A program made the translations under genes and the position numbers. This document shows, in pieces, positions 26,286 through 34,805 of a stretch of DNA of 64,000 nucleotides. Origin of the DNA: Aplysia californica. Its lineage: Eukaryota. Each line of letters opens with the position of its first letter. Within the stretch, counting starts at the first letter, position 1. The notes below the pieces were generated by a model. The model was given only the letters and a program-made list of their open reading frames with translations. It made no database searches and had not been told where the DNA came from. The stretch covers positions 535,065 through 599,064 of the forward strand of contig NW_004797458.1 of NCBI RefSeq assembly GCF_000002075.1. The letters are read 5' to 3'.

Positions 26286-28586
26286 ATGGATAGGGTTAAT
26301 TGTAGACTTTCAATATCATGCACTAGAATCTAGATCTGGACTCTAGATTCTCTAGAGAAGAGATCTAGATCTAGATTCTAGCTTTCTCGAACAAGAACTA
26401 ACAGTTGAGGCAGTTTCTAAAGAAACAACAAAGCAAGAGATGAAGAACAGATTCTAAGGCTCGCCAAGTTCTAATGTCAACACAATGTAATATAGGCCGT
26501 CTTTAAAAAAAATGAAAAGAACAAATGAAAAGAAACATACAATTATATTTAGGCATTCCTGGAATTAATACGTCAGGCAGTGCTGCCGTCGTAAGGGAAA
26601 ACGACGAATGGTGAAAATTTTTCGAATTTGTTATTTTTATATATTTCATAGAGTATTTAATTCTGCATCTGATGGTGTAAAAATGTTTGTCATATCCTAA
26701 TCCGTTGTTGCGTAATTGAGAGTTCGTCGTTTTCCCTTACACTGGCGAACTCCGGGCCACGGCTCAGTGTAAGGGAGAACGACGAATGGTCGATCGGTCA
26801 AGGATCACTGCTCGTTCGGCATTGTCCCCTGGGCTCTGCCGTTGGGCAAATTCGGCATGGGCGACGAATGACAATTGGTCACTGTTGCGTCAGTACAAAC
26901 ATACTAGTTTTTTTGCAAACAAATACACCACCACCCCCTCCCCCAGAGTAGAATCGACCAGGTTTATAAGAATGTATCACATAGTGTGTCTTTCTGTCTG
27001 TCTTCACGTATTAGGCCTATGCTGATGGTGTGAATTGACAAGAGCAGGCGGGAGAGAGGGGAAAACGGATGGGAACAGGGGTAAAGGGGTGGGGATGGGA
27101 GGGTCAAAAAAGTATTTAGGGAGAAATTTATTAGCACTGCATAGTGTCTGCCAGATGTTCACAGACTAACGTCATGTTAGTTTGCTGTCCAGTCATTTGA
27201 CATCCCAAATCCCAACGATGGTTATAGTGCTGCAATTAGTCTAGCACGTGTCACTGGTCGACATCATTATAGAATTACCAAGCAATTAATGAAACTGCGT
27301 TATGAGAGTAAATTTCTTTGTCGAACTTAAAAAGTGGACGTATTGTGGCGACACTTAGTCTTACTTTACGATTTTTTATGACTTGATGGACGTTACGATC
27401 GAGTATAATGTGCTTGATGGACGTTACGATCGAGTATAATGTCTTGCAGATTCAAACTGTCCTTGTCGATCTCTACTTTGTGGTATGTTTTCCGATCCGT
27501 TCAACTGAATCCTTAATTAAAGACAAAGCGTCACATTACCTGTCCTGAAAGCTTTTGTGAAACAGTCTTGTCAGATTGTTACATTTCTTACGTGAAAGTT
27601 TGACTTTGCAATGATCTGATCGTATTATTGACATTGTAACATTGTTGATCCCTTTGGTCGTGCAGGGAAAATTTTGCAATTAGCGAAAATAAAAGTAAAA
27701 CTCGCTTCTGAAGAGAATGCAATAGAGAGATATCGTGGAGACCAAACTTTGGTTCCGAATGGGACAGTTTTAAATCAAGCGGTTGAAAATGTGTGCTTAT
27801 CTGATTTGTACACTGACTGTGTTTAGCACTAGCATTTAACCAAGTGAGGAAGGGAAACGAAGATCGTTTACCGAGTTACAATTGGGATATAACAAACACC
27901 TAACTTTATACGCATAATAGCTAGATCTCTAGTTTGTATACACTATACACGTCTTATTTTTATTTGTAGTAACCAGTACACAGTCATTACTGTCAATAAT
28001 GCGTCACAAATGACCATCGCCTACGCCCATAAACGTTCACGAGTGTAAAAGAGAACGACGAACCGTACCATTCGTCGTTTTCGCTTACATCGCAAGGCTC
28101 ACCTGCATGTGCGCAATGTAAGGGAGAACGACGAATGTCGAATAACTTTGCTACTTTTTTCCTAAGGAAGTGGCTATTCTCACCTGGGGTGAGAATAGAT
28201 TTATACGATCGACCTCTCACCGCGGGTGAGACTTGCCACCGTAGGCTATTCTCACCCGGTGTGAAACAAGACCTGTTTTTCCTAATTTCGGAATACTTTC
28301 TATCGATATGGATGATCAAATGGATAAAGGCAAAGAAAAGATTACGTTAGAGCACAAAATTAAGTAAGCTAATTTTATCGACTACAAAGATGCTATGGCT
28401 ATTTCACTTTTTGAATCGAGCCGAACTACGGGGATCGCCATTTTGTTTTGCCCGGAAGTTCTCGCAAGATCTACTCCTCCCCTCTTCTCTCTCTCTCTTT
28501 CTGAATACTGTCTATCGGTGTGGACGATCAAATTGACCAAAACAAAGTTAAAAAATGATGTTAAAACACAAAAGTAAATTAATTTG

Positions 28587-28807
28587 TAAATAAATGTCAA
28601 CACTCTTTGTGACTTGACGAGGACTTTAATAATCAAGCACAATGAAGACATACGTCAGACGATGCATGACTGGGACAGAAACGGAACAGAAATAAAGCAG
28701 ATGAATATGATTGACAAATAAGGGAAATAATAATAATGGACACAAGGAACAGATACGAATGATGGCACATACATGTGGTCTTGTAGCTACTGAATGATAT
28801 TCCTCTA
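28587..28807 (-). repeat. 3' LTR of the Gypsy element
   Basis: Identical to 33230-33450 except one base; adjacent to the poly-G PPT. Confidence 0.95.
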
Positions 28808-28927
28808 CGCCCCCCCCCCCCCCCCCCCCAAGTCTTTGGAGTAGAACAGAAAAAACTGATGTAATGTCAAGAAATAATGGTGATATAACAAGGAACAAAT
28901 GATTGATCAATGAATGTTTGAATCAGA

Positions 28928-31900
28928 CTAAGATTTGGAGTCAATTGGCTTGGGGCTCTGTCTGGCCAATAGCCTTGCTGATCGCCGAGTGACGCCTGGA
29001 GGTGTGCTCACGCTTATGGGAGCATCTTGCTCTTGTATGCCAGGGGCGTTGTGCGGCTGGAGCGAACGTAGAGCACGCGGGGTGGCTTGAGCCTGAGGTT
29101 GTGGAACCACCGTCTCGACAGCAGGGCGTGGATCAGGTGCTAATTCTTGCCCGGATTCGGGGACAGTAGGCATCGATGGATCGTGTGTTGGGGGGTCCTG
29201 AACGCCAGCTGGTTGTGGTAGATCCGGGCAAGGAGAGGGCGGCGAGGTCACGCTGGGCTTGGTATGCTCGGGGGTGTGAATATTCTGAGGCACTGACTGT
29301 GGTGGTGAGGTGCCACCCGGGATCATTGTCAGTGGTGAGCGTGGGACCACAGGCATGTAGTTGCGGAGGAACTTTCTGTTGCGAAGAGTGACGCGGCCAG
29401 AGCCATCCACTCGAACGACGTACTGGTCAAATTGACGTACTTCGACTACAATGCCCGTCTTGTCCCATTTGGTCGGGTGGGTTCCCGTTTGGTTCTGTAT
29501 GCGCACACAGTCACCGACGACGAGTGGAGGTAAGATGCGAGTGTGCTCAGAGAGGCGCTCAGCGGTGAGCATGTGCCGGTTCCTCAGTGCCTCCTCTCGC
29601 GACAGAATGGTTTCACGCCAGGTACTGTGAGGCTGATACTTCCCTGGGTGGATGGGGATGAAGTCCCGTATTGGACGTCCAAAGATACACATCGTTGGGG
29701 ATAGGTGGGTGTCACGATCAGGAGTGTTCCTGTATTGCAGCATTGCGCGCTGGAACTTGTCAGTGTTTAAAGATCCTTGGGCACCTGTGTTGTCAGCGAT
29801 CAACCGTTTCACTGTCTTTACTCCAACTTCAGCGCGACAATTAGATTGGGGAAAGGCGACTGAAGAGACCCTGTGGTGGACAGCCCAGTTGCAAAGGAAG
29901 GTGGAGGTTGCCAGGGACGTGAACTCTGGGCCTCCGTCCGATGTCAGTTCATGGGAGGCTTCTTCAACGATAGGCCAGTTACTGTACCTGTCGACTGCAA
30001 CTAGGTAGCTGTGGCCTCGATGATGAAAATAATCCGCCGCAATACATTGGAACGGGTATGCCGGTGCTATTGGAGGGGTGGGAGGTGCACTCGGCTGGGA
30101 AGGTGCCATGCGGTTGCATGACTGACAGCGGGTCCGCACTTCAGTGATGGCCGGGGTCATGCCGAGCCAGAAAAACGAGGCCACAGCTCGAGAGCACATT
30201 TGGGACACACCCTGGTGAGCAGAGTGTAAGGACTGGAGGACTCGCTCACGGAGCGACGGGGGGATGACTACCCGGTCGTGGTACAGGATGACACCATCAA
30301 ATGTCGTGAGTGAGGAACTCCCGGAATTGATGGTATGGGCGAAGATCAGGGGACAGAGAAGTCCTGTCTTCAGGGAACCCATCCTCAATAGTGTTACTCA
30401 AAGCAGTCATTGTAGAGTCGCTGGATGTTGCAAGTCGAATCTCGTCCCAAGTCACTGACTTGATCACCTCAGTTGGAGCGAGGTCAGGTTTGGAGCATAC
30501 CTGGTTGGTGTCGTCCAGTTCCTGGGTGCAGATGGCAGAAAGAAAGTCGTGTGGCAGTTCAGGTGTCAAGGGAGGGTCATCAGGGAGCAGAATGGGAGCG
30601 GCAGCATCAGGGAGCCTGAGAGTGTTAGGGCTGCCCACTGGTCTGCGGGAGACGGCATCTGCTGCAGCATGGCGTAGACCGGGGATGTGGACGATGCGGA
30701 AGCGATATCTAAGGGACTTCTCCGTGAGGTTCCTGAGGCGGGGATTGGGGATATCGTCGAGACACCGGTCCCCAAACGTCTTCAAAAGAGGTTTGTGGTC
30801 CACCGCCACGATCAGGTCGGAACAACCCAAGGTGAAATGGCGTGCTTTGTCTAGTGCATTAACCGCAGCCAGGGCTTCACTTTCTATGGGCGCATAGCGG
30901 GACTCGGCTCCTGATGTGAATCGACTACCGACCAGGGTGATCTTCCAGCCAGTTTTGCGGCAAAATGGCTTTTCCGAAAGACAAGTACAATGTTTCTGGA
31001 AGAGCCAGAAGCCTATGCCATCCTTGCTCCAGTCGGTGGCAAGGCAAGTTGGTTTCTTCTTGTCAAATATTTCAACCCCTTGGTGGATTTCGTTGCTGAT
31101 GGCCTCCTTTGACCATTCAAACAGACGGCCGAGCTCCTCTGCCCATTCGAGGCGTTTTCCCGGCTTCAGCGCTTCCCGGAATGGGAGCATGCGTTCAGCG
31201 GAAGCGAAGGCATAGGATACCTGATTGATGTGACCGAACCAGCTCCTGACGTCGGTGATGTTCCGAGGTGTGGGGAAATGTCGAATGGCCTCCAGGTAGC
31301 GGGCACATGGGCGCACGGTGGAGGGAGTTATTTCGAAACCTGCAAACTCAACCGTAGTTTTGGCGAATTTAAACTTGGATGGGTTGAGTATGATGCCATT
31401 GGTGCCACATAGGTCATGCCACTTGACGGCCTGAAAAAAGGCTTCCTCAATAGAGTTTGACCACATAAGGGTGTCGTCAATGCATTTGGTTTTGTGGGGG
31501 AAGTCGGCAACGATCTCATCGAAGTGGCGGCTGTATCCATCCCCGGATGATATGTAGCCTTGAGGAGCCACTGCTCCAAGCCCTCTCTGTTCTCCTCTGT
31601 GGCAGGAAACGGGAGGGAGGTTGGTGGTGGCGGAGGTGATTGGCGGTGTCAGCACCCGCAAGTCGGATTGTCCTTCGAATTGATAGCTGCACTGGTGGCG
31701 CCAATGGTCGGAAAGCTAGGAGGGATTATTCCCAAAGCCACACAGGCTTGCTTGCTTAGGAATACCCGACCAGTGGATGTGGTGAAGTACACCATCTGGT
31801 GGGTCCTCAGCTTGGTGTTGGACGGAGATGTACCAGAAATACGAAGGGGAAGGGCTCCGATGATGTCAATGGCCCCACGATTCGCAGCTGTCATCTTCAT

Positions 31901-33208
31901 GTTGACAGGGAGGAGATGACGGCGAGTGAGGCTCATCCTAGTCAAGAGTGCTACGCCCGCCAGGCACGACTGGCACGCAGTATCTACCATAGCTTGGTAC
32001 TTGACGGGAGAGTTGCTGCCTCTCAGAGATGGCGGGAAGCCGAGAGATTGGGCGTCTGAAGGCACTGCCTGGATGGTGACGTTCCCAAAAGACCGAGGGT
32101 CGGATGCTCGCTTCTCCCATGCCCTGCAAAACTCGTTGTATACATGATGGTCTAGGGATACAGAGTGCGCATTAGACACTGGTGTGGCGGAATCTGCACC
32201 GCATAGACTGTCAAAGGCGGCAGCAGAGTCATCCAGGGCATTGGTGGGGTTGCGATTCCGTGACGACTGTTGGCAGAGGTTGGCGAAATGATTGGATAGG
32301 CCACACCTGGTGCATCTTTTACCAAATGCCGGACACTTCTTCATACGTTCCTGTCTACCATTCCCATGGTCCAGTTTGCCGCAGTAATTGCAGGGGAACG
32401 CTTGGCCCTTACTGTGGAACAAGTTGCCCTGAGTGCTGAGCTTCCCACTGCGCTTGTAGGAGCTTGTGGCCACTGCCGTGGTGTAGGAGCAGCTATCAAC
32501 GAGGCGACTGGCTGACCTCTTGCCACTCTCCTTCGCCTCCACGTAGCAGAGTGCATCCTTAAGGGACATGTCCTGCTTTGACTCTCCTAATATGTCAAGT
32601 CGGATCTCCTCATCAATTAGACCTCGGATGAGGACGTCACGATTCATCATATCGCTATAGTCCACGCTGGGTTCGTGGACATCTGGAGGGCACCTAGGGC
32701 ATTTTATCTTGAAGTTGCAAACCCCAGCCTGGCCCCTGAGGCGGGCGGCGAAGGCTCTGACAGGCTCGTCCCGGTCTTGCTTCATTTGATGTAGCTGTAC
32801 TCGTGCTACCATGATGTTTTCCTGGCGCACCGCCAGGCTCTTGATGTTCTTTAGGACAGTGTCCTCTTCGCTGGAGGCTAGGGCGCCGAATGTCCTTGTG
32901 AGATCTTTTCATAGCGACTCATCGCAGCACTCGAGAAGCTGGAAGACGATGTCTGCACCAGTGAGGCGAGCCGCTTGTTTGTAGTCGGCCCACCGTTGGG
33001 TGAAGTATGACCACGCCTCGCTCGTTCCGGATGCAGACACTACAGGGCGTCGCACTTTCTCAGCCTTGGCTGCCGCAGTCGGTGCATTCGCTCGTGTTGC
33101 ATGGGCTGTGGTGGCGTGGATGTCAATGAGGCGTGTCAACACCTCGGTCGGCGTAGATGCAGGCCACTCCATGTCGCAGTCCGGGGCAGGGCAAGGGATG
33201 GTGGTCAT
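28928..33208 (-). pseudogene. Gypsy gag-pol pseudogene
   Basis: In-frame TGA at 32909-32911. Frameshifts at ~31655 and ~30305. RT N-terminal part deleted at ~31575 and integrase core shortened at ~29955. Confidence 0.9.
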
Positions 33209-33229
33209 GATGTATCTCTTATGTCTTCA

Positions 33230-33450
33230 TAAATAAATGTCAACACTCTCTGTGACTTGACGAGGACTTTAATAATCAAGCACAATGAAGACATACGTCA
33301 GACGATGCATGACTGGGACAGAAACGGAACAGAAATAAAGCAGATGAATATGATTGACAAATAAGGGAAATAATAATAATGGACACAAGGAACAGATACG
33401 AATGATGGCACATACATGTGGTCTTGTAGCTACTGAATGATATTCCTCTA
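33230..33450 (-). repeat. 5' LTR of the Gypsy element
   Basis: Direct repeat of 28587-28807; gag ATG at 33208. Confidence 0.95.
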
Positions 33451-34805
33451 TTTGGTCGTCTACAAAGATGCTACGGCTATTTAACTTTTCGAATCGAGCC
33501 GAACTACGCGGGTCGCCATTTTGTTTTGCCCGGAAGTTCTCGCGCTACTCCTCTCTCTCTCTCTCTCCACTGCCCACAGACAAAATTGTACGCTTTTAGT
33601 AGGCTAACAGTAGTAATGGAACGTTTGTTCACGGCACAGAATTCTACAATTTTTCTGTTATCACAGTGTAGAATTCTGTGTTTAAGGGTGAACGCAAAAT
33701 TGGTTGGCCTAGATCTAGATCTAGGCTATAACGGTGAACGCGCACCGGGTGAGAATAGCCAAAAGACTCGCCAGCACTATTCTCACCCAGGGTGAGAACA
33801 GAGGTGGCCTTTACCTAAACCATTCAAACTTTAGAAACTTTTTCATGAACACCTTAATCAGATATATGGTGAATTACAGCTTAAAAGAGTGAAAAATAGA
33901 AGAGTTATAAAGTGAAAACTGTTTTTGCCTCTCCTGAAAAATTTGCCTCGGTACCTGCGCAGGACCATTCGTCGTTTGCCCTTACGACGGCAGAGTGGGC
34001 GTCATCGCTTGGCTTGAAGTTGAAGGGAATGGCAGGCACTGAGTGACGAGTGAGTCAAATCTCTCTGTCTCTGTGTGACAGGATGTTTGTAACCATTATT
34101 CTGTTTTACCATCAACAAACCGACGTATTTATGAAGATACTTCACAAGAGTATAAAAGGGGTCTTCGTTTACATCATGTATCAACATTCTAGCCTTTATC
34201 ACATTGTCTCTCTATCCAATTTGATCACCCAGAGTTTCCGGATGAATGCGAAATTTTACTTCAATTAATTGTTTCGTTCAATTAATCAATGACGACGGAC
34301 TTTTAACTTGTGTGTAACTAGCAAAGCAAAACAAATATAGAGTAATGTCCCCTTACTTGCAACTATTTTCCTTGGCCTGAGGTGGGTTACCTTACATCCT
34401 TGTACTTAGTTTAGTGAGGGCGAGGGGATATAAATTCGCCTTTATCGGGGGATAACAGAAGCCTCTGTTTTTAAAACTTATTATAACATTTATCATGTAG
34501 ATTTATCTCTGATCCGTTACTATAGAAGGCTTTATCTGCTCCCTATTTTTCTGTTATTTCAAACATCTTCTACGGTTTTGTTGCGAAAGTCTGTCAACAA
34601 TTAAAATTAAAAGTGTCAACCAGTCACAAAAAGTAGATCAGTTTGTTCTTCCAGGGCCAAGTTCCATTGAACGAAACTGAAACTAAGACTTGGACTTGAT
34701 AATTAAATTGGGGTTCTCTCTCAACGGCCCTCATCTAGGCCTAGTGGATCTTTATTTATCTGTGTCTGTCTGGGGGAATTCTTCCATCTAGATCAGGTGA
34801 GACAA

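Follow-up and report, generated by a model that had tools for sequence, protein, structure and literature searches.

The retrotransposon Tf1 of Schizosaccharomyces pombe primes reverse transcription with a 5' segment of its own mRNA that is folded onto the primer-binding site (PBS) (PMC4600332), and elements of hosts ranging from fungi to vertebrates are assumed to do likewise (PMC4600332, PMC6317226). Tf1 and Tf2 of S. pombe and Tj1 of S. japonicus have no transfer RNA (tRNA)-type PBS, the PBS that follows the 5' long terminal repeat (LTR) being complementary to a segment of the LTR upstream, and this arrangement is shared by a Ty3/Gypsy-type LTR retrotransposon on the minus strand of a 64,000-nucleotide (nt) stretch of Aplysia californica DNA (the window, meaning the whole of the DNA analysed, to which all element coordinates refer). 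The Tf1 primer is reportedly the first 11 nt of the transcript, according to work of Levin from 1995, and is said to be freed by the RNase H domain, in work by the same author from 1995-1998. Minus-strand synthesis of the Aplysia element is probably primed by its own RNA in the manner of Tf1 and not by a tRNA, a reading of the sequence to which a probability of about 0.8 is attached. The original prediction that this Gypsy lineage may self-prime is supported by covariation of the PBS with the LTR in 24 families, together with controls in which the arms were swapped between families or slid out of register.

The element is 4,864 bp long and is bounded by two 221-nt direct repeats that differ by one mismatch, as seen by repeat comparison. 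The LTR boundaries were set by the junction of the 3' LTR with the flank in five genomic copies and by the 5-bp target duplications of these copies, and the same junctions place the last base of the LTR at A33230. The features that bear on priming are as follows.

33230 to 33450, minus strand: 5' LTR of 221 nt, TAGAGG...TTATTTA, with ends TA...TA, a direct repeat of 28587-28807
33285 to 33295, minus strand: primer site inside the LTR, the proposed self-primer TATGTCTTCAT, complementary to the PBS ATGAAGACATA, kept in at least 12 genomic 5' ends and co-varying with the PBS in 23 other families
33268 to 33273, minus strand: ATTAAA polyadenylation signal of the LTR, 11 nt downstream of the primer site
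33220 to 33230, minus strand: PBS ATGAAGACATA, its first base being the last base of the LTR, the exact reverse complement of TATGTCTTCAT
28587 to 28807, minus strand: 3' LTR, differing from the 5' LTR at one base, with the primer site repeated at 28642-28652

The 5' LTR is followed by TGAAGACATAAGAGATACATC and then by the gag ATG at 33208-33206, the complementary stretch ATGAAGACATA beginning on the last LTR base and being followed by GAGATACATC and the ATG. A script check of the letters bears out the exact complementarity of 33220-33230 to 33285-33295 on which the original prediction was built, and two further parts of it hold in the window: no TGG or other PBS of the type that pairs with a tRNA CCA end follows the 5' LTR, and the LTR site lies just upstream of ATTAAA. 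The gag ATG had been placed 22 nt from the LTR; it is indeed close, at an exact spacing of 21 nt. The bases bordering the 11-bp duplex are unpaired on both sides (T/T and G/A). An 11-mer complement anchored at the LTR end occurs in 5 of 2000 dinucleotide shuffles of the LTR and the analytic chance from LTR base composition is ~4e-4, giving an overall range of ~4e-4 to 2.5e-3 for the single element. Both arms are kept in at least 12 Aplysia 5' ends, including one subfamily at 88% identity, and are identical within the Aplysia family save for scattered single-copy mutations. Because the arms are near-identical among the Aplysia copies, their conservation within the family is weak evidence when taken alone.

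It is the comparison with other families that is decisive. A word search with the pol region gave more than 2,000 relatives, the best 120 of which (67-88% identity) were examined and comprise, besides proteins of Elysia chlorotica and Batillaria attramentaria, numerous ocean and other assembly contigs. DNA of ten families was taken via the protein relatives (67-88% pol identity), and 80 further loci were taken from metagenome contigs, down to 38-45% identity. The comparative set consists of the 24 families with a definable 5' leader, at 43-88% pol identity, from Elysia and from ocean or other metagenome and assembly contigs. Where both LTRs are present the LTR end fixes the position of the PBS independently of any pairing, and for fifteen of the 24 families the anchor was set independently in this way by the LTR pair. 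Pair counts were taken from an anchored script count, as MAFFT misaligned the 5' arms, which vary in length.

In every one of the 24 families an 11-base stretch beginning on the last LTR base is perfectly paired to a site 36-77 nt upstream in the family's own LTR, so that the suspicion that related families might lack the complementarity is answered by co-varying arms throughout. The arm is 11-15 nt long in the families with an LTR-pair anchor and keeps the same register, with the PBS starting at the last LTR base; in the ten families taken via protein relatives the site is 37-78 nt from the LTR end. The 24 families hold 22 different 11-nt arm sequences, examples of arm sites from different families being TTAAATTGTCAT, TTGCTGTTGTCAT, TGTTGTGAGCAT, TAGTCGTCCAT, TCGTTCGCTCGTCAT and GTTGGCACATGCAT. 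Positions 1-11, counted from the 3' end of the primer, are Watson-Crick pairs in all 24 families, with 3-4 pair types represented at positions 3-11, and pairing decays beyond this point (16, 14 and 11 of the 24 at positions 12-14). In 20 of 24 families a T faces a T immediately beyond the duplex. Compensatory changes between PBS and LTR site were looked for and are found between close relatives as well: the window family has TATG.../...CATA where its closest relative, from an ocean metagenome, has TGTG.../...CACA; compensated changes also set subfamilies apart (AGTTATACTTATCAT, AGTTGTACTTATCAT and AGTTGTATTGATCAT, for instance, each matched by its PBS); and in one assembly three subfamilies each have their own version of a 15-nt arm, with the changes mutually compensated.

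The controls remain at the chance level. A family's own LTR gives 9 of 9 pairs, compared with a mean of 3.5 of 9 when PBS and LTR are swapped between families and at most 3.1 of 9 when the register is slid by 1-3 nt, and exact matches across families do not exceed 9 nt, a length reached only between the two closest families. Complementarity, a fixed register at the LTR end, an 11-bp minimum and covariation across a deep clade are directly established, and neither a tRNA primer nor chance can explain the PBS, since a never-tRNA-like PBS at the start of minus-strand synthesis co-varies with its own LTR while the controls stay at chance.

The same data bear on the explanation that a host tRNA, a tRNA fragment or another small host RNA is the primer and that the match to the LTR is incidental. 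Precedent exists, as some retrotransposons use internal tRNA fragments (the half-tRNA PBS of plant Copia elements; PMC6317226). Against it, the 22 different PBSs found at one position each fit the LTR of their own family and no other; a TGG start is seen in a single PBS of the 24, and even this one has an 11-nt match to its own LTR. There is no tRNA gene in the 64-kb window. Priming by a host RNA is considered very unlikely, and the earlier concern that a tRNA might be the partner of the PBS is met by the same counts.

A different reading of the stem formed by the LTR site and the PBS is that it is a conserved leader structure serving packaging, dimerisation, translation or the control of polyadenylation, with some other primer starting synthesis. 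The predicted folds lend themselves to this, in that the duplex closes a multibranch leader fold enclosing the poly(A) signal. The presence of the duplex in 19 of 20 minimum-energy leader folds, with all 11 pairs in that of the window leader, counts in favour of self-priming. Three further observations speak for a primer. The 3' arm without exception begins on the last LTR base, the point from which minus-strand synthesis has to proceed; no alternative TGG-type PBS follows the LTR, with the gag ATG only 21 nt away in the window copy; and none of the 264 pairs in the 24 families is G.U, which is expected and fits well if the PBS is re-copied from the primer, and fits less well a stem kept only for the stability of the RNA. 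A purely structural role is judged improbable on these grounds. A hairpin of 4-9 bp, a candidate U5-IR-like stem-loop, ends at or within ~8 nt of the PBS in about half to two thirds of the 24 single-sequence folds; an alignment-based fold gave no consensus.

Under self-priming of the Tf1 type, the LTR's R part would contribute the 11-nt primer UAUGUCUUCAU, which would fold back on the 11 nt that start at the last base of U5. The element's RNase H would then cleave after the terminal ...CAU of the primer, and the reverse transcriptase (RT) would extend the freed 3' end through U5 and R, a course demonstrated by experiment for Tf1. As the PBS would be re-copied from the primer in each cycle, the two arms would drift together and stay perfectly complementary. 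The primer would be supplied by the 5' copy of the site, a part that could also be played by the copy in the 3' LTR or by a co-packaged RNA.

This last substitution amounts to a variant of self-priming in which the primer is the site copy of the 3' LTR or of a second packaged RNA, acting in trans or from the 3' end. In most families (not L044) the poly(A) signal is downstream of the site, and for this reason transcripts of those families carry the site at their 3' ends wherever transcription starts; in addition, LTRs as short as ~105-119 nt leave only ~37-49 nt upstream of the site for a promoter. Nothing stands directly against the variant, the preference for the 5' copy coming from the local fold-back, which is the minimum-energy structure, and from Tf1, which uses the 5' copy (PMC4600332). 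Priming from the 3' copy or in trans is regarded as unlikely.

Several points weigh against self-priming or against the strength of the comparison. The arms of nine metagenome families came from an inverted-repeat search upstream of gag, which introduces a selection bias. Pairing is missing in L083 (55% identity), where the LTR end is cut by the end of the contig, no clear pairing was obtained in L144 (38% identity), and L077, L084 and L088 have no pairing in the upstream sequence present on their contigs. The terminal A of the LTR belongs to the integrated LTR as well as to the duplex, so that either one primer base must be retained or the integrase must set the end. Both have precedents: a single ribonucleotide of the primer stays behind in HIV-1, and Tf1 reportedly does not remove its primer. 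Finally, an initiator (Inr)-like CAG lies 3-28 nt upstream of the site in several families, and because of this the RNA may start upstream of the primer, unlike in Tf1.

Further loci did not show the pairing. L076 has a PBS whose LTR site falls beyond its contig; in L085 the LTR end as defined by the LTR-pair method contains N letters, although the upstream inverted-repeat search gave the same 11-nt arm as in L086; and L092, L116, L131 and L140 are decayed copies in which the PBS is mutated or deleted. The leader of L083 (L083:233-713) is filled with repeated GTTGAGCAAC...CTCAAC hairpin units and has no recognisable pair of self-primer and PBS, and its contig breaks off within the 3' LTR.

Three polyA+ single-end RNA-seq runs of Aplysia californica were mapped on 33050-33550. 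Sense reads reach at most 8x and fall only over 33440-33305 and 33287-33254 (U3-R), with no reads over U5, the PBS or the start of gag and no pile-up of read starts at this scarce coverage (<=8x). The few sense reads end near 33254, downstream of ATTAAA, a weak signal. Poly(A)-tailed contigs that would define R were sought among 91 related loci and none was found; terminal overlaps of 30-127 nt in short contigs were considered as R regions and rejected, as they resemble assembler k-mer overlaps.

Most RNA-seq reads in the LTR derive from a polyadenylated RNA antisense to the element (33135-33361, plus strand). Its coverage climbs from the gag start to ~25x and ends at 33361, where 13 reads of one run enter a long A tail 22 nt past a plus-strand AATAAA (33334-33339). 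Antisense RNA has been reported for MchSLE-1 (PMC11046912, PMC10974842). The element is inserted in a dispersed or tandem host repeat, the flanks 33451-33543 and 28372-28465 being 91% alike. This repeat is highly expressed on the minus strand, at 150-250x compared with at most 25x for the LTR, and RNA reads from uninterrupted copies of it join both flanks exactly at the insertion point (33450).

The rest of the element conforms largely to the Ty3/Gypsy pattern, comprising the following features.

28928 to 33208, minus strand: broken gag-pol, delineated from open reading frames, Pfam domains and comparison with genomic copies of 5.3-5.6 kb
28808 to 28837, minus strand: polypurine tract AAAGACTT, then a run of 20 G, then CG, abutting the 3' LTR
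33451 to 33454, minus strand: target-site duplication CAAA, with its other copy at 28583-28586, on both flanks of the element

The hallmarks present are two LTRs with a target duplication (4-5 bp), a PBS and a G-rich polypurine tract. The duplication is 5 bp in four other Aplysia copies compared with the 4 bp of CAAA in the window copy. LTR termini TG...CA, which are usual but not universal in Ty3/Gypsy elements, are replaced by TA...TA in five Aplysia copies and in nearly all related families with defined LTR boundaries. The motif ACTTGGGGGG(N2) precedes the 3' LTR in most related families, as it does in the window element. The G run of the polypurine tract (28810-28829) varies in length between copies, with 20 G in the window copy, 7-8 G in two other genomic copies and ~16 in a third. 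Between families whose LTRs are otherwise unalignable, two short segments are conserved, the U5 end T(T/C)(A/G)T(T/C)TA (L035-L045, L079-L114) and an AAAGAGT-like box ~15-20 nt upstream of it.

The gag-pol of the window encodes a gag with a CCHC knuckle, a protease, an RT with CIDD, an RNase H and an integrase. It is interrupted by an in-frame TGA at 32909-32911, by a deletion of ~478 bp near 31563-31571, through which the N-terminal half of the RT is lost, by a deletion of ~57 bp near 29951 and by at least one further frameshift near 30300-30390. The Aplysia genome holds at least 41 LTR matches to the window family. Four other Aplysia copies measure 5.3-5.6 kb with ends TA...TA, and one longer copy has a single frame through gag, protease, RT, RNase H and most of the integrase. 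Pfam domains in the longer genomic copy follow the order RVT_1, RT_RNaseH, Integrase_H2C2, rve, which is the pol order of Gypsy, and the best solved relative is Ty3 Gag-Pol (E 1e-40). The window copy is a recent, internally deleted insertion of a Ty3/Gypsy-type element of Aplysia of ~5.4 kb.

The catalytic motif of the RT is C(V/I)DD, with Cys in place of the usual Tyr or Phe, in 104 of the 120 best relatives (P0001-P0120) and lies at ~31450-31470 in the window; the upstream RT motif of the family is PQGY(I/V)(A/S)SGD(G/A)Y. No chromodomain (PF00385) is found in the open reading frames of the window, in the longer genomic copy or in any of the best 120 relatives. The description of the element as having a CIDD-type RT and no visible chromodomain is thereby confirmed from the open reading frames and Pfam. 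A literature search did not find CVDD or CIDD RTs mentioned together with retrotransposons. Pol is 67-88% identical among Aplysia, Elysia, Batillaria and many plankton and holobiont assemblies, with the LTRs unalignable (P0001-P0120; L035-L045). Such likeness of pol beside unalignable LTRs may be due to strong constraint; it may also stem from horizontal spread between marine animals, of the kind proposed for Steamer-like elements.

In the searchable literature, demonstrations and predictions of self-priming are confined to the Tf1/sushi/Tcn1 chromoviruses and one plant Copia lineage, and no description of it was found for invertebrate Gypsy elements of this kind. The present finding extends self-priming to a large Gypsy clade outside the chromoviruses, with molluscs and other marine organisms as hosts, and the natural covariation also indicates a minimal duplex of 11 bp with a fixed register. 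It raises the question of whether self-priming is ancient within Gypsy or convergent. It is conceivable, at somewhat less than even odds, that this marine-invertebrate clade (C(V/I)DD, TA...TA, no chromodomain) evolved its 11-nt self-primer independently of Tf1/sushi, with the primer perhaps inside the leader and not at the capped 5' end. An independent origin, if true, would be the second within Gypsy and the first in invertebrates, and the duplex length would be convergent. Abundant as they are in invertebrate genomes, these elements may be overlooked or wrongly scored by annotation pipelines that seek a tRNA-type PBS and LTR ends of the form TG...CA.

Among described mollusc elements, Steamer and the Steamer-like elements of bivalves are similar to the Aplysia element: they are compact (~4.8-5 kb) and of the Gypsy type, their LTRs are short and gag-pol forms one open reading frame (PMC11046912, PMC10974842). 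A Steamer-like identity is unlikely, as MchSLE1 has a putative tRNA PBS (PMC11046912) and a YxDD RT, whereas the PBS of the Aplysia family is self-complementary. Membership in Troyka, which has 3-bp target duplications and CG...CG termini (PMC12440569), was rejected on the 5-bp duplications and TA...TA termini of the Aplysia copies. Many new Gypsy clades are defined in a survey of LTR elements from molluscs, in which no PBS is mentioned (PMC6238403).

The vertebrate sushi group and the plant and fungal Tcn1 clade are Gypsy elements in which self-priming is likewise deduced from complementarity of PBS and LTR alone (PMC6317226, PMC2864245). These chromoviruses carry a chromodomain and cluster with Tf1 in trees of RT and integrase, whereas the Aplysia clade is without a chromodomain. 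The TAR lineage of plant Ty1/Copia elements (Houba, Osr-1) is also predicted to self-prime and is unrelated (PMC6317226), differing in its Copia domain order and plant hosts; self-priming can arise more than once, given that this unrelated lineage is predicted to use it.

The closest comparison remains that with Tf1. The minimal duplex of the Aplysia clade has the 11 nt that Tf1 is said to use, both elements have a single gag-pol frame, and a leader fold joins primer and PBS in Tf1 (PMC4600332) and, by prediction, in the Aplysia element. In contrast to Tf1 and Tj1, the Aplysia element is found in a mollusc, with relatives in marine invertebrates and metagenomes, and it has no chromodomain, an RT with C(V/I)DD in place of YxDD and LTR ends TA...TA. 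The Tf1 primer reportedly lies at the extreme 5' end of the RNA; that of the Aplysia element may lie inside the leader. The Aplysia element is a new lineage that very probably uses a known mechanism.
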